DNA of 64,000 nucleotides from Bugula neritina (lineage: Eukaryota > Animalia > Bryozoa): the NCBI GenBank assembly GCA_964035545.1, contig OZ037765.1:29573504-29637503 (forward strand), given 5' to 3'. Numbering within the stretch: the first letter of the stretch is position 1; each line of letters starts with the position of its first letter. Shown one piece after another: positions 15,209 through 63,998 of this stretch. The notes beneath the pieces were generated by a model. The model was not told the origin of the DNA and ran no database searches. It was given only the letters and a program-made list of their open reading frames with translations. Position numbers and translations under genes: made by a program.

Positions 15209-18200
15209 ATGGAGGCAGAAGGGCCTGAGTTCAATACAGCTGTACTTAAGCAGAAAACAGAGAAGAACTGGGTAGCTCCCACAGTTCTAGCTTTGATCCT
15301 CTCTCTTGTGGCTCTCAGTTTAACTTGCTACATTGGAGTGAGATTGGTAGAAATTGAAAAAGAGCAGCGTCGTCTCAACTCAATCATCCAATCTTTGAAC
15401 TCCCAGGTCAAGCTTATATTTATAGATTCATTGGCTATAAATAAAAACCCAGTTTGTATCAAATGCTGTCATTATGTTAATGAGTTAAATTTAGCTGCTT
15501 CAATGTTATAAGAGATTTTTTTATACATATATTTCCAGGCAGCACCAGTGCATTCACTTAGCAAAAGAAGTGTCAACAGTGCAGATGACCTTGAAGATGT
15601 TCTTACTCAGCTCACACCACGTAAGTTTCAGTTAGTTTTTCATAACACAGAGTAGAGTTTATAGTGTAATTTGTAGCTAGTGTGCTAGCATTTAAATAAA
15701 AGAATTTTGAATATACTAAGCTCTTTAATATTTTAGCAAGTATTGTTTGAGTCTTGGATTGAAAATCATGTAAAAATATATTTGTAGCTTCTTTTGGAAT
15801 ATTTCTTATCTCTAGAATAAAGATCAAATATCAAATTTTTCTTTCCTGCACTATTTTATGATGCTTTTCAACAAAGCATTATATTTCTTTTAGCTTTTTG
15901 CTTGATTTTGGAAAGGAAATAATTTATCGTTTGAATCGAAATATTTGTTAATGCTAATTTAACTATACAACCCATTTTATTGTTAAAGCCTGGTGTAGAC
16001 TGTAGCAACCGTTTTTATTTCTGCTACTTCCCTTGCTTTGATTTAAATTAATCTTTCATTAGTCATGCATTAAATTTAATACGAGTAAAAAGTGTAGTGT
16101 TAGTATAGTCACTATAGTGCATTCTTATAGGAAATCCAAAACAATCTGTGAAAAAAGTTACATCAAATTATTATTCAACTTCATGAGAGTCATTATTATA
16201 TTAGCACAGTTTATATGCCCACATTGCTTTTTAAAAAGCTGCAATGATTCTGGATGCTTATATTAGGAAAATATTTTCATCAATTTATAATTAGCGATGT
16301 CTAGTTTGTGTAAATGTTGAAATTATCACTCAATTTTAAAGCTAGTTTCTTATAGCTAATGTCATTCTGTTAACAAGTTTCGTATACCACACAAAAATAG
16401 TTTGACTCACATTGTTGTTATCTTAGTTAAAACATAATTTGAACTTAGAGATACTTATATTTCCTTGTTTTACAAAGCCGATATTGTTTAAAAAACAATT
16501 TATAAATGCAAAAATTCATTTACAAAAGTATATTAGTAACTGATAGCTGAAAGACATGATAGATGCATTAAAACATTTTGGTGAACAAATAATGGCTATA
16601 CTCAGTGTCCTGTAAAATGGCACTGGTATAAGTGGCACAAGTGGATATAAGTAGGTAAAATGGCACATTTTCAATATTAGAGTTTGGGGGTTAGGGATTT
16701 GGAATAGGGGTTTGAGGATAGTGGTTTGAGTTTGGAGTTGAGGTTTAAGGGGTGGGGGTTTGGAAAAATTTAACATCAGTCTGCCATTTTTATCTACTTT
16801 CTATTTGTGCCATTATTACCCTGTGCCATCATTACTGGTACCATTTTCACCTAAAATCAACTATACTAATAAATCCATATAACCATTCCTGGTCATGATG
16901 TTGAAAGTTTAAGTAGAAGTAATATATGATAATGTGTTTCTTATGCAGCATATCTGTAAAAGGTTATAACCACAATATAATATTCACATGTTTACAGAGG
17001 ATCTTTCCTTACTTAGAGGAGCTCCAGGAAGAGATGGTAGAGATGGAAGAGATGGAAGGGATTGTGATTCAGATGAGTTAGAAAAACTTGTAGAAATGGT
17101 TTTTAATGAATCAAAGAAGAGTGGTGAGACTTCATCTACTGCTAGCACTGCTACTGATAGAAGTCCACAGGGATCCTATGATACAGGTGAAGTGTTACTG
17201 TCATATCTGTGGCAGTTCACAAGCTGGAGTAGAAAATAATAGAAATGAGTTAAATGGAGACATTCAATAGAATATGGAGTCTAGACTCTATAATTGTTGC
17301 TTCTCCATTTACATGTGACATTAGCTAGCAAAGTAATAACAATGTGTTCAATGAAGAAATTTGACGCAAAGAAAGCATGTGTAAACAGCTGATTTGATTT
17401 ACAGATGACTTGCTGCAAAGTTTCAATGAATCCATTGGTTTTGCACTGTTGAGGAAAATGCAGGCAACTTTAGGTAAACTGGAGGACATTGAAGAAGAAC
17501 TTGACAGTCATCAGTCCACTTCTCTCAAAGGTGTTCTTTCTTTATAATGATATGATCTTTAATATATCTGTCTGTGTGTAAATAACAGTAGGTTGAATGT
17601 GCTATTAATTCACTGTTATTTTCAGGTGTTATTTAGATAATAATTGTAACAAAGTGTCGCTAACTAATTTACAAAGATTATGCATGCTGCAATATGTACG
17701 GGCTTTCCATGGATCGATCTCAGCGAGATCGATCTGAGATCGATACATGGAAAGCCGGCGATGGTCTTCTAGTTTTGATTTGCAAAGAGCTCTAATTGAT
17801 TTATGCTGCGGTATCTCATGAGTCGAGGAAAAGTTGCCAGCAACAGCAATTATAATAAACTGTAGATTTATATACTCTACGGGATCTATATATAACACCC
17901 TACATTATGTGTGGTACCTAATGCATGGAAACGCAGTGAATATATGTTTCAGATGATGACGATGTAAGTGAAAGTCAACCAACAACAACTGTCATTGGAG
18001 GGTCAACTTATGTGAGGTGGGGTAGAACTACATGTGGGAACAACTCTCAATTATTATATGAAGGTTAAATCATATTTACTATTAATTGTATGTATTAAAT
18101 ATATTTTTGTTTTTTTTATGTTTCACATTCAGATTTAGCTCTCATAATCATATGCTTAATGCTTCTAACGCCACTATTTGATGTTATACTATTATTATTT

Positions 18201-61626: not shown

Positions 61627-63998
61627 TTATTTGGTACAGACAACACACGTTAGCTCAGCACTTTCAATATACGGTGGACAGTGTCCAGTAGAGACACAAC
61701 TTGCTTTTTGGAAGTAGAATAAGGCACCATCTTCATTTACTGATCTGCCAGCAATTGCTTCAGGTTCAGCATCCATACATTCGAAGGCATAAGCTCTTTT
61801 ATGAGTGTAATGGCCAGCCATTAAATAACCTTCATACTCCTAGAAATAGAAGACATTCACCAAGTTCATAGCCTATCAAATACGAGTGAACTTTAATAAT
61901 GATGTAATACATAACAAAAAATTGTACATTTATACTTTAAATTCATGTAGGAAATGTGAAGGTTTTTGATCATTAATTGTATGAATTAAAATGAAATACA
62001 ATATCCAATTTCAATGATTGCATGTATAAAAACTCACTATTTCAGGTAATGTTCTTAAAACACTCCAATATGCTAATGATTACCTTTGGTGTGTGGGAAT
62101 CCTTTTAAAGTAGATCTTTACACTTACTTGATAGGACATTTTATACATTATTACTTTGCTTAGTCTGAAGTTGTCTTACCTTTGTCCAAAATGGAGGACA
62201 AGTTCTCTTAGCTGGAATCATTAGAGTTGCTGATCTTGTTGGAGCAAAGCATCTTGCACAAGGAACATTGTGATCGTGCATAGCATTGGGGAATATAGAA
62301 GATCCCGTTTGATACTCTGCACCATATACCCAGGAACCAGTACTACCAGAGTATGTTGAATATTTTGGTTTTAATGGTAAACATTGGTAGTTTGATGCAC
62401 CTCCTTCATGAGTATAGTGGGAACCAATAACAAAACCTGCAAGCAAAAAGCACCAAAAAGTAGATTTAAGAGCATTAATCAAATGGTTGTATGAGATTTA
62501 CATTTACAAGCAAGGGAGAAGAAAAGTGATGTATATATTATACTATTGCAAGCCTATGAAATAAAATAATAAGATGATTTTTGACTATTTGGCCCTCTAA
62601 AGTTGAAACCAGAAAGGATTATGTACAGATAAGTGTGTTCTTCAAGCTGTCATGTTTTAAGTAAGAAAACAACTACACATACATACATCCAAACATGAGC
62701 TTCTCTATTCCTTCTATTATTTGTTGACTAATGTGATAGCAATAATTATTATCTATGCATGATTGTTCGTTAAATATTATTCTATTATTATTGTAATGGC
62801 CTCAATCTGAAAGGTTTCCCATTTCAGAGAAACATAAAAAAGTAATAAAGTAATTATTTTTTAAACATCTCAATAGGAAAGATGAAAAACAAAAGCAGGT
62901 TTAATGCATAAAATTATTAATATTATTTAATATATATAATTAATAATATTATCTAATATATATAATTATTAATGAATATGATTTAACCTTCATATAATAA
63001 TTGAGAGTTGTTCCCACATGTAGTTCTACCCCACCTCACATAAGTTGACCCTCCAATGACAGTTGAGGTTGGTTGACTATCACTTACATCATCGTCATCT
63101 GAAACATATATTTACTACCAATGAACTCAATAATTATTAACTATTCCAGCTCAGTGTTTACTACATTTTCATTCTGAACCACTGCATGTATGTAGTTTTA
63201 TATAGATTCGACTTTATAATGTAGACTTATATACATTCACTGCCTTTCCACTGGGAACCACACATTATTTAGAGTGTTATATAGTTTTCTTAGAGTTTAC
63301 AGGAACTTCATAATTGCTGTTGCTGGCACGTGTTCCTCACCTCATGAGATACCGCAGCCTGAACCTTTTAAAGCCTTTTGCGAAACTAGACCACTATACT
63401 GCAGAATGCATATAAGTCTTTGTAAATTCTTAGCAACCCTTCTGTTACAACTATTATCCTAATAGCATGAATAATCTTTGTAAATTACTTAGTGACACTT
63501 CGGTTACAATTATTATTCAAGTGACATGGGGAAGTTATAGTGGAAATAGTTGTGAAATATAGTAATATACATTCAACTTATTGCTCTTCAAACACACACA
63601 CACACACACACACACACACACACACACACACACACACACACACACACACACACACACACACACACACACACACACACACACACACACACACACACACACA
63701 CACACACACACACACACACACACACACACACACACACACACACACACACACACACACACACACACACACACACACACACACACACACACACACACACACA
63801 CACACACACACACACACACACACACACACACACACTAATATTAAAGATCATATCATTATGAAGAGAGAATACCTTTGAGAGAAGTGGTCTGATGACTGTC
63901 AAGTTCTTCTTCAATGTCCTCCAGTTTAGCTAAAGTTGCCTGCATTTTCCTCAGCAGTGCAAAACCAATGGATTCATTGAAACTCTGCAGCAAGTTAT
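61627..63998 (-). CDS. Cluster gene F, exons 4-7 (5' exons beyond the right edge)
   Basis: complement(join(61627..61839,62180..62436,62988..63098,63873..63998)), open and splice-intact. Confidence 0.88.
63592..63835. repeat. (AC)n microsatellite in intron 4 of gene F
   Basis: Dinucleotide run, 244 bp. Confidence 0.99.

Follow-up and report, generated by a model that had tools for sequence, protein, structure and literature searches.

The 64,000-nucleotide stretch of Bugula neritina DNA analysed here (the window) probably carries part of a lineage-specific tandem array of eight copies that belongs to the known spongin-like short-chain collagen (SSCC) family and has a variant protein architecture. 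The family itself is already known, and what is new here is an anchored, nearly rodless form of it. Spongin-like short-chain collagens are widespread and strongly expanded in invertebrates, and outside sponge skeletons, to our knowledge, no function has been assigned to them. The cluster spans 65 kb, with seven intact copies and one pseudogene (C8); all eight exon-1 copies found genome-wide lie inside G000:C1:29588712-29653910, and the array extends 16 kb beyond the window end. Within the window lie five intact 7-exon genes (C1-C5), a sixth (C6) cut at the window end, and three truncated pseudogenes or fragment groups (Table 1). The five complete genes, one partial gene and fragments of the original prediction were all found, and C1-C5 have open frames with GT-AG at every intron. 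The encoded proteins are 390-393 amino acids long. A perfect 1,003-nt palindrome lies near the array, and an Rfam scan of the window returned zero matches.

Table 1. Features of the array in window coordinates; minus-strand features are given from 5' to 3'
Feature	Coordinates	Strand	Remarks
C1 TATA box	15157-15164	+	TATATAAA; 52 nt before ATG
Gene C1	15209-18960	+	Intact, 390 aa, 7 exons; frame and splice sites, spliced contigs
C1 exon 1	15209-15406	+	Cytoplasmic tail, signal anchor, short helix
C1 exon 2	15539-15620	+	Linker with KR site
C1 exon 3	16998-17186	+	Five Gly-X-Y triplets, one Cys, Ser/Thr-rich stretch
C1 exon 4	17405-17530	+	Helical stalk
C1 exons 5, 6, 7	17953-18063, 18205-18458, 18748-18960	+	Predicted NC1-like head
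Orphan inverted exon-2 copy	19913-19832	-	Downstream of C1; 95% identical, AG/GT retained
Gene C2	23254-27564	+	Intact, 393 aa, 7 exons; frame and splice sites; second in-frame ATG at 23239, 5 codons upstream of start
C2 exons	23254-23454, 23591-23672, 25277-25465, 25701-25826, 26179-26289, 26747-27003, 27349-27564	+	
Second orphan inverted exon-2 copy	29187-29106	-	
Gene C3	37068-41135	+	Intact, 391 aa, 7 exons; frame and splice sites
C3 exons	37068-37268, 37397-37478, 38779-38967, 39234-39359, 39764-39874, 40324-40577, 40923-41135	+	
Gene C4	47669-43710	-	Intact, 391 aa, 7 exons; frame and splice sites
C4 exons	47669-47469, 47336-47255, 46192-46004, 45598-45473, 45143-45033, 44504-44251, 43922-43710	-	
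psiC fragment group	49317-50373	+	Exon 5 twice and 5' part of exon 6
psiC parts	49317-49427, 49725-49835, 50289-50373	+	Exon 5, exon 5, first 85 nt of exon 6
psiA, truncated pseudogene	52621-51204	-	Exons 1-4 missing; stop and loss of splice sites in exon 5; 1-nt deletion in exon 6; of exon 7, last 76 nt only
Gene C5	54742-58001	+	Intact, 392 aa, 7 exons; frame and splice sites
C5 exons	54742-54942, 55079-55160, 55714-55902, 56168-56293, 56731-56841, 57336-57592, 57789-58001	+	
psiB, truncated pseudogene	59360-60546	+	Exon-4 piece, exon 6, exon 7
psiB exon 6	59817-60055	+	Two stops and an internal deletion
psiB exon 7	60334-60546	+	Frame still open
Gene C6, in-window part	64000-61627	-	Intact overall, 392 aa; completed from next 20 kb
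C6 exons 7, 6, 5, 4	61839-61627, 62436-62180, 63098-62988, 63998-63873	-	
C6 exons 3-1	240-2226 nt past window end	-	Flanking 20 kb

The TATA box reported as conserved is indeed present at -52 in every copy in the window. The C1 element recurs at equal distance in C3, C4 and C5 and, past the window, in C6 and C7, and C2 carries the version TATATAAG, also 52 nt before its ATG. Spliced C1 contigs in the RNA-like runs X8-X10 show the joints 15406/15539, 15620/16998 and 18458/18748; these cover three of the six C1 junctions, exon 1 included, with introns empty, and agree with the exon model.

Membership of the head in the short-chain collagen C4 family, as originally proposed, is upheld by relatives so named in UniRef, by ten aligned cysteines and by NC1 as the best structural match of a relative's model. 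Database searches were made exon by exon, and joined proteins were used for translation, alignment and dN/dS. The exon-6 open reading frame matches a UniRef 'Short-chain collagen C4-like' protein of Branchiostoma (P0027, E 1.2e-15) and 46 others, and a family profile search returned 6,318 proteins at E <= 1e-10, mostly combining collagen with this head type. The array head exons align exon by exon with complete heads of relatives, and all ten head cysteines (C1 residues 226, 254, 294, 297, 314, 341, 368, 374, 385 and 388) occupy columns with 99-100% Cys in a 130-row family alignment. The HSQ motif is absent from the head; spongins with ten cysteines, seven shared with collagen IV and three of their own, are likewise without HSQ (PMC5395295). 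PMC5395295 and PMC12549020 cite Exposito 1991 and Aouacheria 2006 for the family. The Bugula genome has at least 75 head exons, spread over several clusters. Long open frames at two other loci, considered as possible single-exon paralogs that could serve as full-length reference, proved to read through introns.

Profile methods did not link these exons to collagen IV itself. A Pfam scan of each exon gave nothing at E <= 10, Pfam C4 (PF01413) included, and a genome-wide PF01413 search matched at three other loci only; true collagen IV genes lie elsewhere, at 2.30/2.36 Mb of genome sequence C7 and 16.09 Mb of genome sequence C2 (names of sequences, not of the gene copies). PDB profile searches, run from alignments of the exons and of the family (14 and 130 rows), returned chance matches or collagen triple helices, never NC1, and a search of ESM Atlas features from exon 6 found unnamed bacterial clusters only and was uninformative.

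Structural models of the family point to NC1. Fold and trimer predictions were run on the database relative P0022, which is about 50% identical to the array heads and whose head model has a pLDDT of 90.3; an earlier structure prediction with a 14-row alignment was discarded at pLDDT 47.5. Collagen IV NC1 accounts for all of the top ~40 Foldseek matches of the P0022 head (best E 3.9e-4, prob 0.97, TM 0.25), whose best VIA-align match has Z 7.5 and an rmsd of 4.6 Å over 151 aligned residues. These models suggest, with moderate confidence, that the head fold of the family is NC1-like. The predicted P0022 trimer scored an ipSAE of 0.94 versus 0.49 for the best control, on a mark that 21 of 30 solved homo-pairs and none of 23 single chains passed; at least 94% of contacts agree between its runs, at pLDDT of at least 88, and the pass may reflect the model's memory of NC1.

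In this predicted trimer, 23 of 37 variable head sites belong to the large chain-to-chain interface and not to a free binding face; loops L1, L2 and L3 and positions 177, 181, 189 and 191 are among these 23. Collagen IV NC1 has been described as a recognition module that directs assembly (PMC5395295), and head differences at subunit contacts could similarly act as a chain-selection code, setting homo- or heterotrimers and thereby combinatorial matrix or ligand complexes, in place of any recognition of pathogens or self. We regard such a code as rather unlikely, since the interface is not significantly enriched in variable sites (62% versus 52% of invariant sites, p = 0.35) and was modelled on a relative, perhaps echoing solved NC1 structures.

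From N to C terminus, the type II signal anchor of the array proteins is followed by a dibasic site and only five Gly-X-Y triplets, then by a stalk that is Ser/Thr-rich and helical, and finally by a 10-cysteine head. Computed hydropathy supports the membrane anchor that had been proposed: residues 26-45, which follow a Lys-rich 21-residue tail, are the one hydrophobic stretch, with a Kyte-Doolittle 19-residue mean of 2.2-2.5, and no other stretch exceeds 1.6. The collagen part comprises five triplets only (G[AP]PGRDGRDGRDGRD), homologous to the opening of the collagen part in relatives; paralogs elsewhere in the genome total 39-58 triplets, divided over two or three runs, and the database relatives P0022 and P0026 have zero. 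A conserved KR site (SL[SN]KR-S) lies 26 residues before the first Gly-X-Y, and in 15 of 30 relatives an RxxR stands 20-24 residues ahead of their first triplet. Conservation of this basic site suggests ectodomain shedding, and the protein therefore may not be a receptor; KR is a dibasic site and not the furin RxxR consensus, which makes shedding uncertain. Judged from the motif and its position, the ectodomain is probably shed at the basic site. The array subfamily also swaps near-invariant family residues (CAVC to CARC, HVE to FQ[K/I/Q], CP to CG and NGxPCPPY to SSTGHCPPY), so its assembly or binding may differ from that of the family.

The pseudogenes and fragments in the array back the suggestion of birth-and-death turnover. 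Assembly errors are common in tandem arrays, and the nearby palindrome could be a fold-back artefact, which would favour reading the copies as uncollapsed haplotypes or a misassembled repeat. We rejected this reading as extremely improbable: the copies differ by 3-10% in exons and ~30% in introns, vary in intron length and occur in both orientations; contigs from one DNA run match unique C1 intron stretches without difference and at even depth; and independent metagenome contigs hold distinct C5-like and C6-like genes in the same gene-fragments-gene order.

Comparison of the copies does not bear out the picture of a conserved stalk and a variable head. Mean nucleotide p-distances for exons 1-7 are 0.067, 0.029, 0.066, 0.047, 0.030, 0.080 and 0.105, so that exons 1-5, described earlier as near-identical, in fact differ by 0.029-0.067, and protein identity is 90.1% over the N-terminal 215 columns versus 89.3% in the head. 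With dS of 0.10-0.12 in the stalk and 0.24 in the head, the nucleotide difference between the two is mostly synonymous, which argues for homogenisation of the 5' half, not diversification of the head. Head differences do gather in a few loops, as had been noted, with 36 of 41 variable positions outside predicted strands (Fisher p = 1.7e-4). These variable sites are also the least constrained positions family-wide, and the same positions vary in more than 100 distant relatives. By pairwise Nei-Gojobori estimates on seven recombining paralogs, which have low power for selection at few sites, dN/dS is 0.09 in the head scaffold, 0.27 over exons 6-7, 0.65 at loop sites preselected by family-wide variability and 0.51 at five loops picked post hoc; a single 8-codon loop (L1) reaches 1.4. 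The excess of non-synonymous loop change on which the original prediction had staked itself is thus not seen, dN/dS being below 1 in all predefined classes. The head scaffold is under strong purifying selection, and the loops are relaxed rather than positively selected.

The copies are strongly mosaic, with 1,001 of 1,891 informative site pairs failing the four-gamete test, which points to gene conversion. Between C6 and its allele or ortholog from another sample, exons differ by 6.1-6.2% and introns by 2.7-3.9% (dS 0.139, dN/dS 0.33), and at 22 of 29 differing sites the state of that allele or ortholog is found in other paralogs. The excess exon divergence includes synonymous sites, a signature of conversion rather than selection; exon divergence equal to or above intron divergence between samples would also fit diversity-enhancing selection. 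Contigs of two other samples hold non-identical mosaic versions, among them a gene with an open frame at the place of the pseudogene C8; 0 of 4 exon-6 open reading frames from these samples are identical to any array copy, and a C5-type gene of another sample bears a C1-type loop.

Such differences between samples, together with the loop-centred variation, the L1 ratio, and mosaic copies for which pseudogene fragments could serve as donors, are what a diversified recognition locus would predict, in which selection and conversion diversify the loops of ligand-binding heads and repertoires differ between individuals in immunity, allorecognition or adhesion. Bryozoans are colonial animals, a habit that would suit such a role. 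We nevertheless find this reading, the central claim of the original prediction, unsupported and unlikely. The dN/dS values for the head, the family-variable loops and the C6 allele pair are all below 1, the excess exon divergence is also synonymous, as in conversion, and the variable sites match positions left free across the family. In addition, heads diverge by only ~11%, the proteins are probably shed, and the predicted subunit interface takes in most of the variable sites. Its stronger form, a germline-diversified system in which conversion draws on pseudogene donors to shuffle loop variants of a trimeric NC1-like head and mixed paralog trimers multiply specificities for allorecognition, microbes or larval settlement, we consider very unlikely; if real, such a system would give the spongin/NC1 fold its first role in recognition. 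By itself, variation that clusters in the loops of tandemly arrayed genes is no evidence for a diversified receptor family.

We favour instead a variant SSCC array in which each gene would encode a type II signal-anchored protein, as hydropathy indicates. The collagen rod has shrunk to five Gly-X-Y triplets, with a Ser/Thr-rich, N-glycosylated stalk with helical segments in its place, a change that the sequence shows. The 10-cysteine NC1-like head, to judge from the relative's model, probably drives trimer assembly as NC1 does in collagen IV. A proprotein convertase probably cuts the conserved KR-S between anchor and mini-collagen, a step suggested by the position of the motif, and the released ectodomain would be a soluble or matrix-bound trimer. 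The array itself would evolve by duplication, inversion, pseudogenisation and frequent interlocus gene conversion, the last shuffling a common pool of variants among the copies.

Several known systems share parts of this design. Collagen IV NC1 (PF01413) matches the family head model best in structure, forms a trimer like the one predicted here, and has two similar subdomains and seven shared cysteines (PMC5395295); the array head differs in having 10 cysteines versus 12, in giving no detectable Pfam or PDB profile match, and in following no long collagenous domain. FREPs, C1qDC proteins and collectins are likewise tandem multigene families with an oligomerising stalk, a globular C-terminal head, loop-centred variation and pseudogenes, whereas the array shows no non-synonymous excess, only ~10% protein divergence and an unrelated head fold. 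Ectodysplasin-A and the membrane collagens XIII, XVII, XXIII and XXV are type II, shed and trimeric. Their order of short cytoplasmic tail, signal anchor, basic processing site, short stalk of collagen or coiled coil and C-terminal trimeric head recurs in the array, where the trimer is predicted, and by this analogy an anchor-then-shed logic is likely. The array departs from this group in its unrelated head fold, which is NC1-like and not TNF-like, and in KR in place of RxxR, and its five triplets would be insufficient alone for a stable triple helix.

The closest likeness is to the SSCC proteins, with a C-terminal head of ~180 amino acids bearing 10 conserved cysteines, no HSQ and a predicted NC1-like fold, a collagen part that opens with LRG-x-x-GRDGRDG, a basic site ~25 residues upstream of that opening, and broad tandem-cluster expansion in invertebrates. 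Whereas SSCC proteins have a signal peptide, the array proteins have a type II signal anchor; their collagen stops after five triplets at a Cys, a non-collagen Ser/Thr-rich helical stalk replaces the rod, and near-invariant head residues are changed. Nematostella has four SSCC genes (PMC12549020), against at least 75 head exons here. The array shows that the SSCC family can lose its collagen rod and acquire a membrane anchor, which points to the head as a module that assembles by itself and may signal or adhere, and not as a fibre component. Its compact, expressed set of seven genes is suited to questions of trimer assembly, shedding and functional head differences made by conversion.

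The locus is an ordinary array of a known, expanded family, shaped by birth-and-death turnover and gene conversion; its reading as a variable-receptor locus is not supported by the tests available and is now an unlikely alternative. Mapping of the seven-exon gene from its exon 1 and exon 6 open reading frames, by self-comparison and splice-site inspection, gave a model with GT-AG at all introns and exons 3, 4 and 5 in phase 1-1. Five complete open copies of 390–393 amino acids (C1–C5) lie inside the window, and a sixth, C6, is truncated by the window edge and intact at 392 amino acids once the next 20 kb is added. 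This added sequence also holds an intact seventh copy, C7; the eighth, C8, also beyond the window, retains all seven exons, with exon 6 interrupted by a stop and a frameshift. A search of the whole genome with exon 1 recovers exactly eight copies, C1–C8, confined to 65 kb, and three truncated pseudogenes or fragment groups are present in the window. The sequence observation in the original prediction, of five complete copies, one partial copy, pseudogenes and a TATA box for each complete copy, was largely right.

The window, at chromosomal position G000:C1:29573504-29637503, is AT-rich invertebrate DNA (about 32% GC) with long microsatellites, and its first 15,000 nucleotides contain no member of the short-chain collagen family. 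An open reading frame near its start has a weak C2-domain match below the Pfam cut-off (E = 0.0025) and probably represents an exon from an unrelated gene further upstream. Dinucleotide microsatellites between gene copies, (CT)n and stretches of (TG)n reaching about 700 nt, are possible recombination substrates. Two orphan inverted copies of exon 2 follow C1 and C2, about 0.9 and 1.5 kb past the respective stop codons; both retain an open frame and intact AG/GT, and they are probably scars of inversions. Between C2 and C3 is a retroelement built as a perfect 1,003-nt inverted repeat (100% complementary) enclosed by an outer 257-nt inverted pair. Its 485-amino-acid reading frame has no Pfam match, and the closest ESM Atlas clusters (0.94–0.95) bear HTH_animal, RVT_1 and GIY-YIG domains, the domain combination of Penelope-like elements. 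Alternatively, so perfect a palindrome could be an assembly fold-back.

Coordinates of gene, repeat and flanking features in the window
Feature	Position	Strand
Open reading frame with weak C2-domain match	393–809	minus
C1 exons 1–7 (splice-site inspection)	15209–15406, 15539–15620, 16998–17186, 17405–17530, 17953–18063, 18205–18458, 18748–18960	plus
C1 intron 1	15407–15538	plus
Orphan exon 2 copies	19832–19913, 29106–29187	minus
Dinucleotide microsatellites	21851–22752, 28352–28721, 59040–59432, 63535–63914	
Additional upstream ATG, C2	23239	
Additional upstream ATG, C5	54727	
Retroelement	29964–33087	
Retroelement inverted repeat arms	30222–31224 / 31825–32827	
Retroelement open reading frame	31187–32644	

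Every promoter carries TATATAA[A/G] at 52 nt upstream of the ATG (56 nt in pseudogene C8), and the 60 nt preceding the ATG are about 87% identical between copies. C2 and C5 have an additional in-frame ATG five codons upstream of the common start (ATGTTCAGAGCAGTCATG), arising from one A-to-G difference. Alignment of contigs from four public sequencing runs to C1 indicates transcription. Contigs of the three RNA-like runs, X8–X10, cover the exons, leave the intron bins empty and are spliced exactly at 15406|15539, 15620|16998 and 18458|18748 (GT..AG), matching at least three of the six model junctions among the contigs listed, with the anchor exon included. Divergence of several percent from C1 is common among these contigs, which demonstrate that the subfamily is transcribed and spliced without proving this for C1 itself. 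The DNA run X1 shows zero differences to unique intron stretches of C1.

Fold and assembly of the head, the C-terminal 10-cysteine NC1-like domain encoded by exons 5–7, were modelled on P0022, a database relative that consists of a signal peptide and a bare head, is about 50% identical to the head exons of the window and stands in for the array proteins. The P0022 head model reached a pLDDT of 90.3 with 130 aligned relatives, and its roughly 40 best-ranked Foldseek matches among PDB entries are without exception collagen IV NC1 domains (best E = 3.9 × 10−4, probability 0.97, TM only 0.25). VIA-align against single-chain NC1 trimers gave Z = 7.5 and an r.m.s.d. of 4.6 Å over 151 aligned residues, and either half of the head aligns with one C4 subdomain at Z of about 3. 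These matches lend moderate support to the published homology of spongins and NC1 domains. Three P0022 heads are predicted to form a trimer, with an ipSAE of 0.94 against 0.49 for the best control, at least 94% contact agreement between runs and pLDDT of at least 88; of 30 solved homo-pairs 21 attain the ipSAE mark, and of 23 single chains none does, a calibration on two copies rather than three, and the result may reflect memory of solved NC1 trimers.

The original prediction opposed a conserved stalk to a variable head, and the proteins show no such contrast: across C1–C7 the N-terminal part is 90.1% identical and the head 89.3%. The stalk–head contrast in nucleotides is real and is located at synonymous sites, with dS of 0.10–0.12 in the 5′ part versus 0.24 in exons 6–7, and dN of 0.04 versus 0.065. 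Placement of the variation in loops stood, as 36 of 41 mapped variable positions in exons 5–7 fall outside predicted strands (p = 1.7 × 10−4). These head positions are also the ones that vary most when more than 100 distant relatives are compared (mean entropy 1.87 versus 0.88 bits, p = 1 × 10−8). An overall non-synonymous excess in the loops, which the prediction expected, was not found: in pairwise estimates on seven sequences, which have low power, dN/dS is 0.09 in the head scaffold, 0.65 at loop sites preselected by family-wide variability and 0.51 in five loops picked post hoc, and only loop L1 alone (8 codons) reaches 1.40. In the predicted P0022 trimer, chain-to-chain contacts take in 23 of the 37 variable head sites and 68 of the 131 invariant ones (p = 0.35), so that the variable sites mark no free binding face separate from the assembly interface.

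The array copies are mosaics: the four-gamete test is failed by 1,001 of 1,891 informative site pairs, and compatibility is slightly higher for adjacent sites than after shuffling (p = 0.016). Introns have diverged far more than exons, with p-distances between copies of 0.28–0.36 for introns 2–6; intron 1 (about 130 nt) differs by 0.135, and exon 2 has a dS of only 0.02. The stretch from the promoter through exon 1 and intron 1 to exon 2 acts like a single homogenised unit, which may be due to conversion or to a regulatory element. An allele or ortholog of C6 is carried by L011, a metagenome contig of a different sample; it matches C6 at 97% identity in introns and only 94% in exons 6–7 (dS 0.139, dN/dS 0.33), and at 22 of 29 differing sites its state is present in other paralogs of the assembly. 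This pattern is the signature of interlocus conversion feeding exon variants, not of amino-acid selection. Two C5-like contigs from a third sample (JGI 3300002729), L015 and L016, are 95.8% identical to each other and are mosaics too, pairing a loop 3 of C5 type with a loop 2 of C1 type; their divergence is 0.7% in intron 5, against 5.9% for exon 6 and 6.9% for intron 6, and the divergent block resembles a tract of recombination or conversion, either between alleles or between recent duplicates. A 5.5-kb contig from the third sample repeats the gene–fragments–gene order of C8–fragments–C7 with exons 5–7 open at the C8 position. Pseudogene status differs between samples; like the mosaic variants, it does not demonstrably differ between individuals.

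Each array protein begins with a Lys-rich cytoplasmic tail of 21 residues and a single hydrophobic stretch (residues 26–45, Kyte–Doolittle 2.2–2.5) that we read as a putative type II signal anchor. After the anchor, a brief helix-like segment leads into a linker with an invariant SL[SN]KR-S, a mini-collagen of five Gly-X-Y triplets and a Cys (L-L-R-G-[AP]-P-G-R-D-G-R-D-G-R-D-G-R-D-C), a Ser/Thr-rich stretch carrying N-glycosylation sequons, a helical exon, an acidic DDDD run and the head of about 180 residues. Among the 30 relatives with a sufficiently long N terminus, 15 have RxxR 20–24 residues N-terminal to the first Gly-X-Y, and a further 5 carry a dibasic pair; in the array subfamily an invariant KR-S lies 26 residues ahead of the first triplet. 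Conserved pro-region cleavage at KR-S would free the ectodomain from its anchor, and shedding is the least certain step because KR is not a furin consensus. The nearest out-paralog, a single gene on chromosome C3 at 25.11 Mb (L012, G000:C3:25111000-25120500) with a head 60–67% identical, has the same plan, including a matching type II anchor exon, a mini-collagen of four triplets with a Cys after them and the head motif STGHCPPY, indicating that the anchor-plus-mini-collagen design is older than the array. Two other clusters that we sampled have 39–58 triplets in total. We did not find a published description of an architecture joining a type II anchor to vestigial collagen.

Assignment to the short-chain collagen C4 family was correct. 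Pfam scans of each exon gave no match, and the Pfam C4 model matches only three other loci of the genome, which we interpret as the true collagen IV genes. A word search with the exon 6 reading frame recovered 47 proteins, one of them the UniRef entry ‘Short-chain collagen C4-like’ from Branchiostoma; complete heads among the matches align to the three head exons in order with all cysteines conserved, and a profile built from the head alignment finds 6,318 proteins at E ≤ 1 × 10−10, most with an N-terminal Pfam collagen domain. Genome-wide the head exon is present in at least 75 copies, in tandem clusters on several chromosomes. The array subfamily has fixed changes in the head exons, such as exons 6 and 7, at family positions that are 95–99% invariant (CAVC to CARC, CP to CG and G to N), and the family H-V-E motif is F-Q-[K/I/Q], its last residue differing between copies; these replacements might alter assembly or ion binding. 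Publications mention ‘short-chain collagen C4’ outside sponges in expression lists, which cover the pedal disc of a sea anemone, growth and stress in oysters, and bivalve ‘defensome’ counts, with no functional test among them. Nematostella has four genes of the spongin short-chain collagen type, expressed mostly in neuroglandular cells (PMC12549020). Spongins, found across invertebrates except ecdysozoans, pair an NC1 domain with a short collagenous one; they share seven cysteines with collagen IV and add three that are specific to them (PMC5395295), and the array heads agree with them in having 10 cysteines and no HSQ motif.
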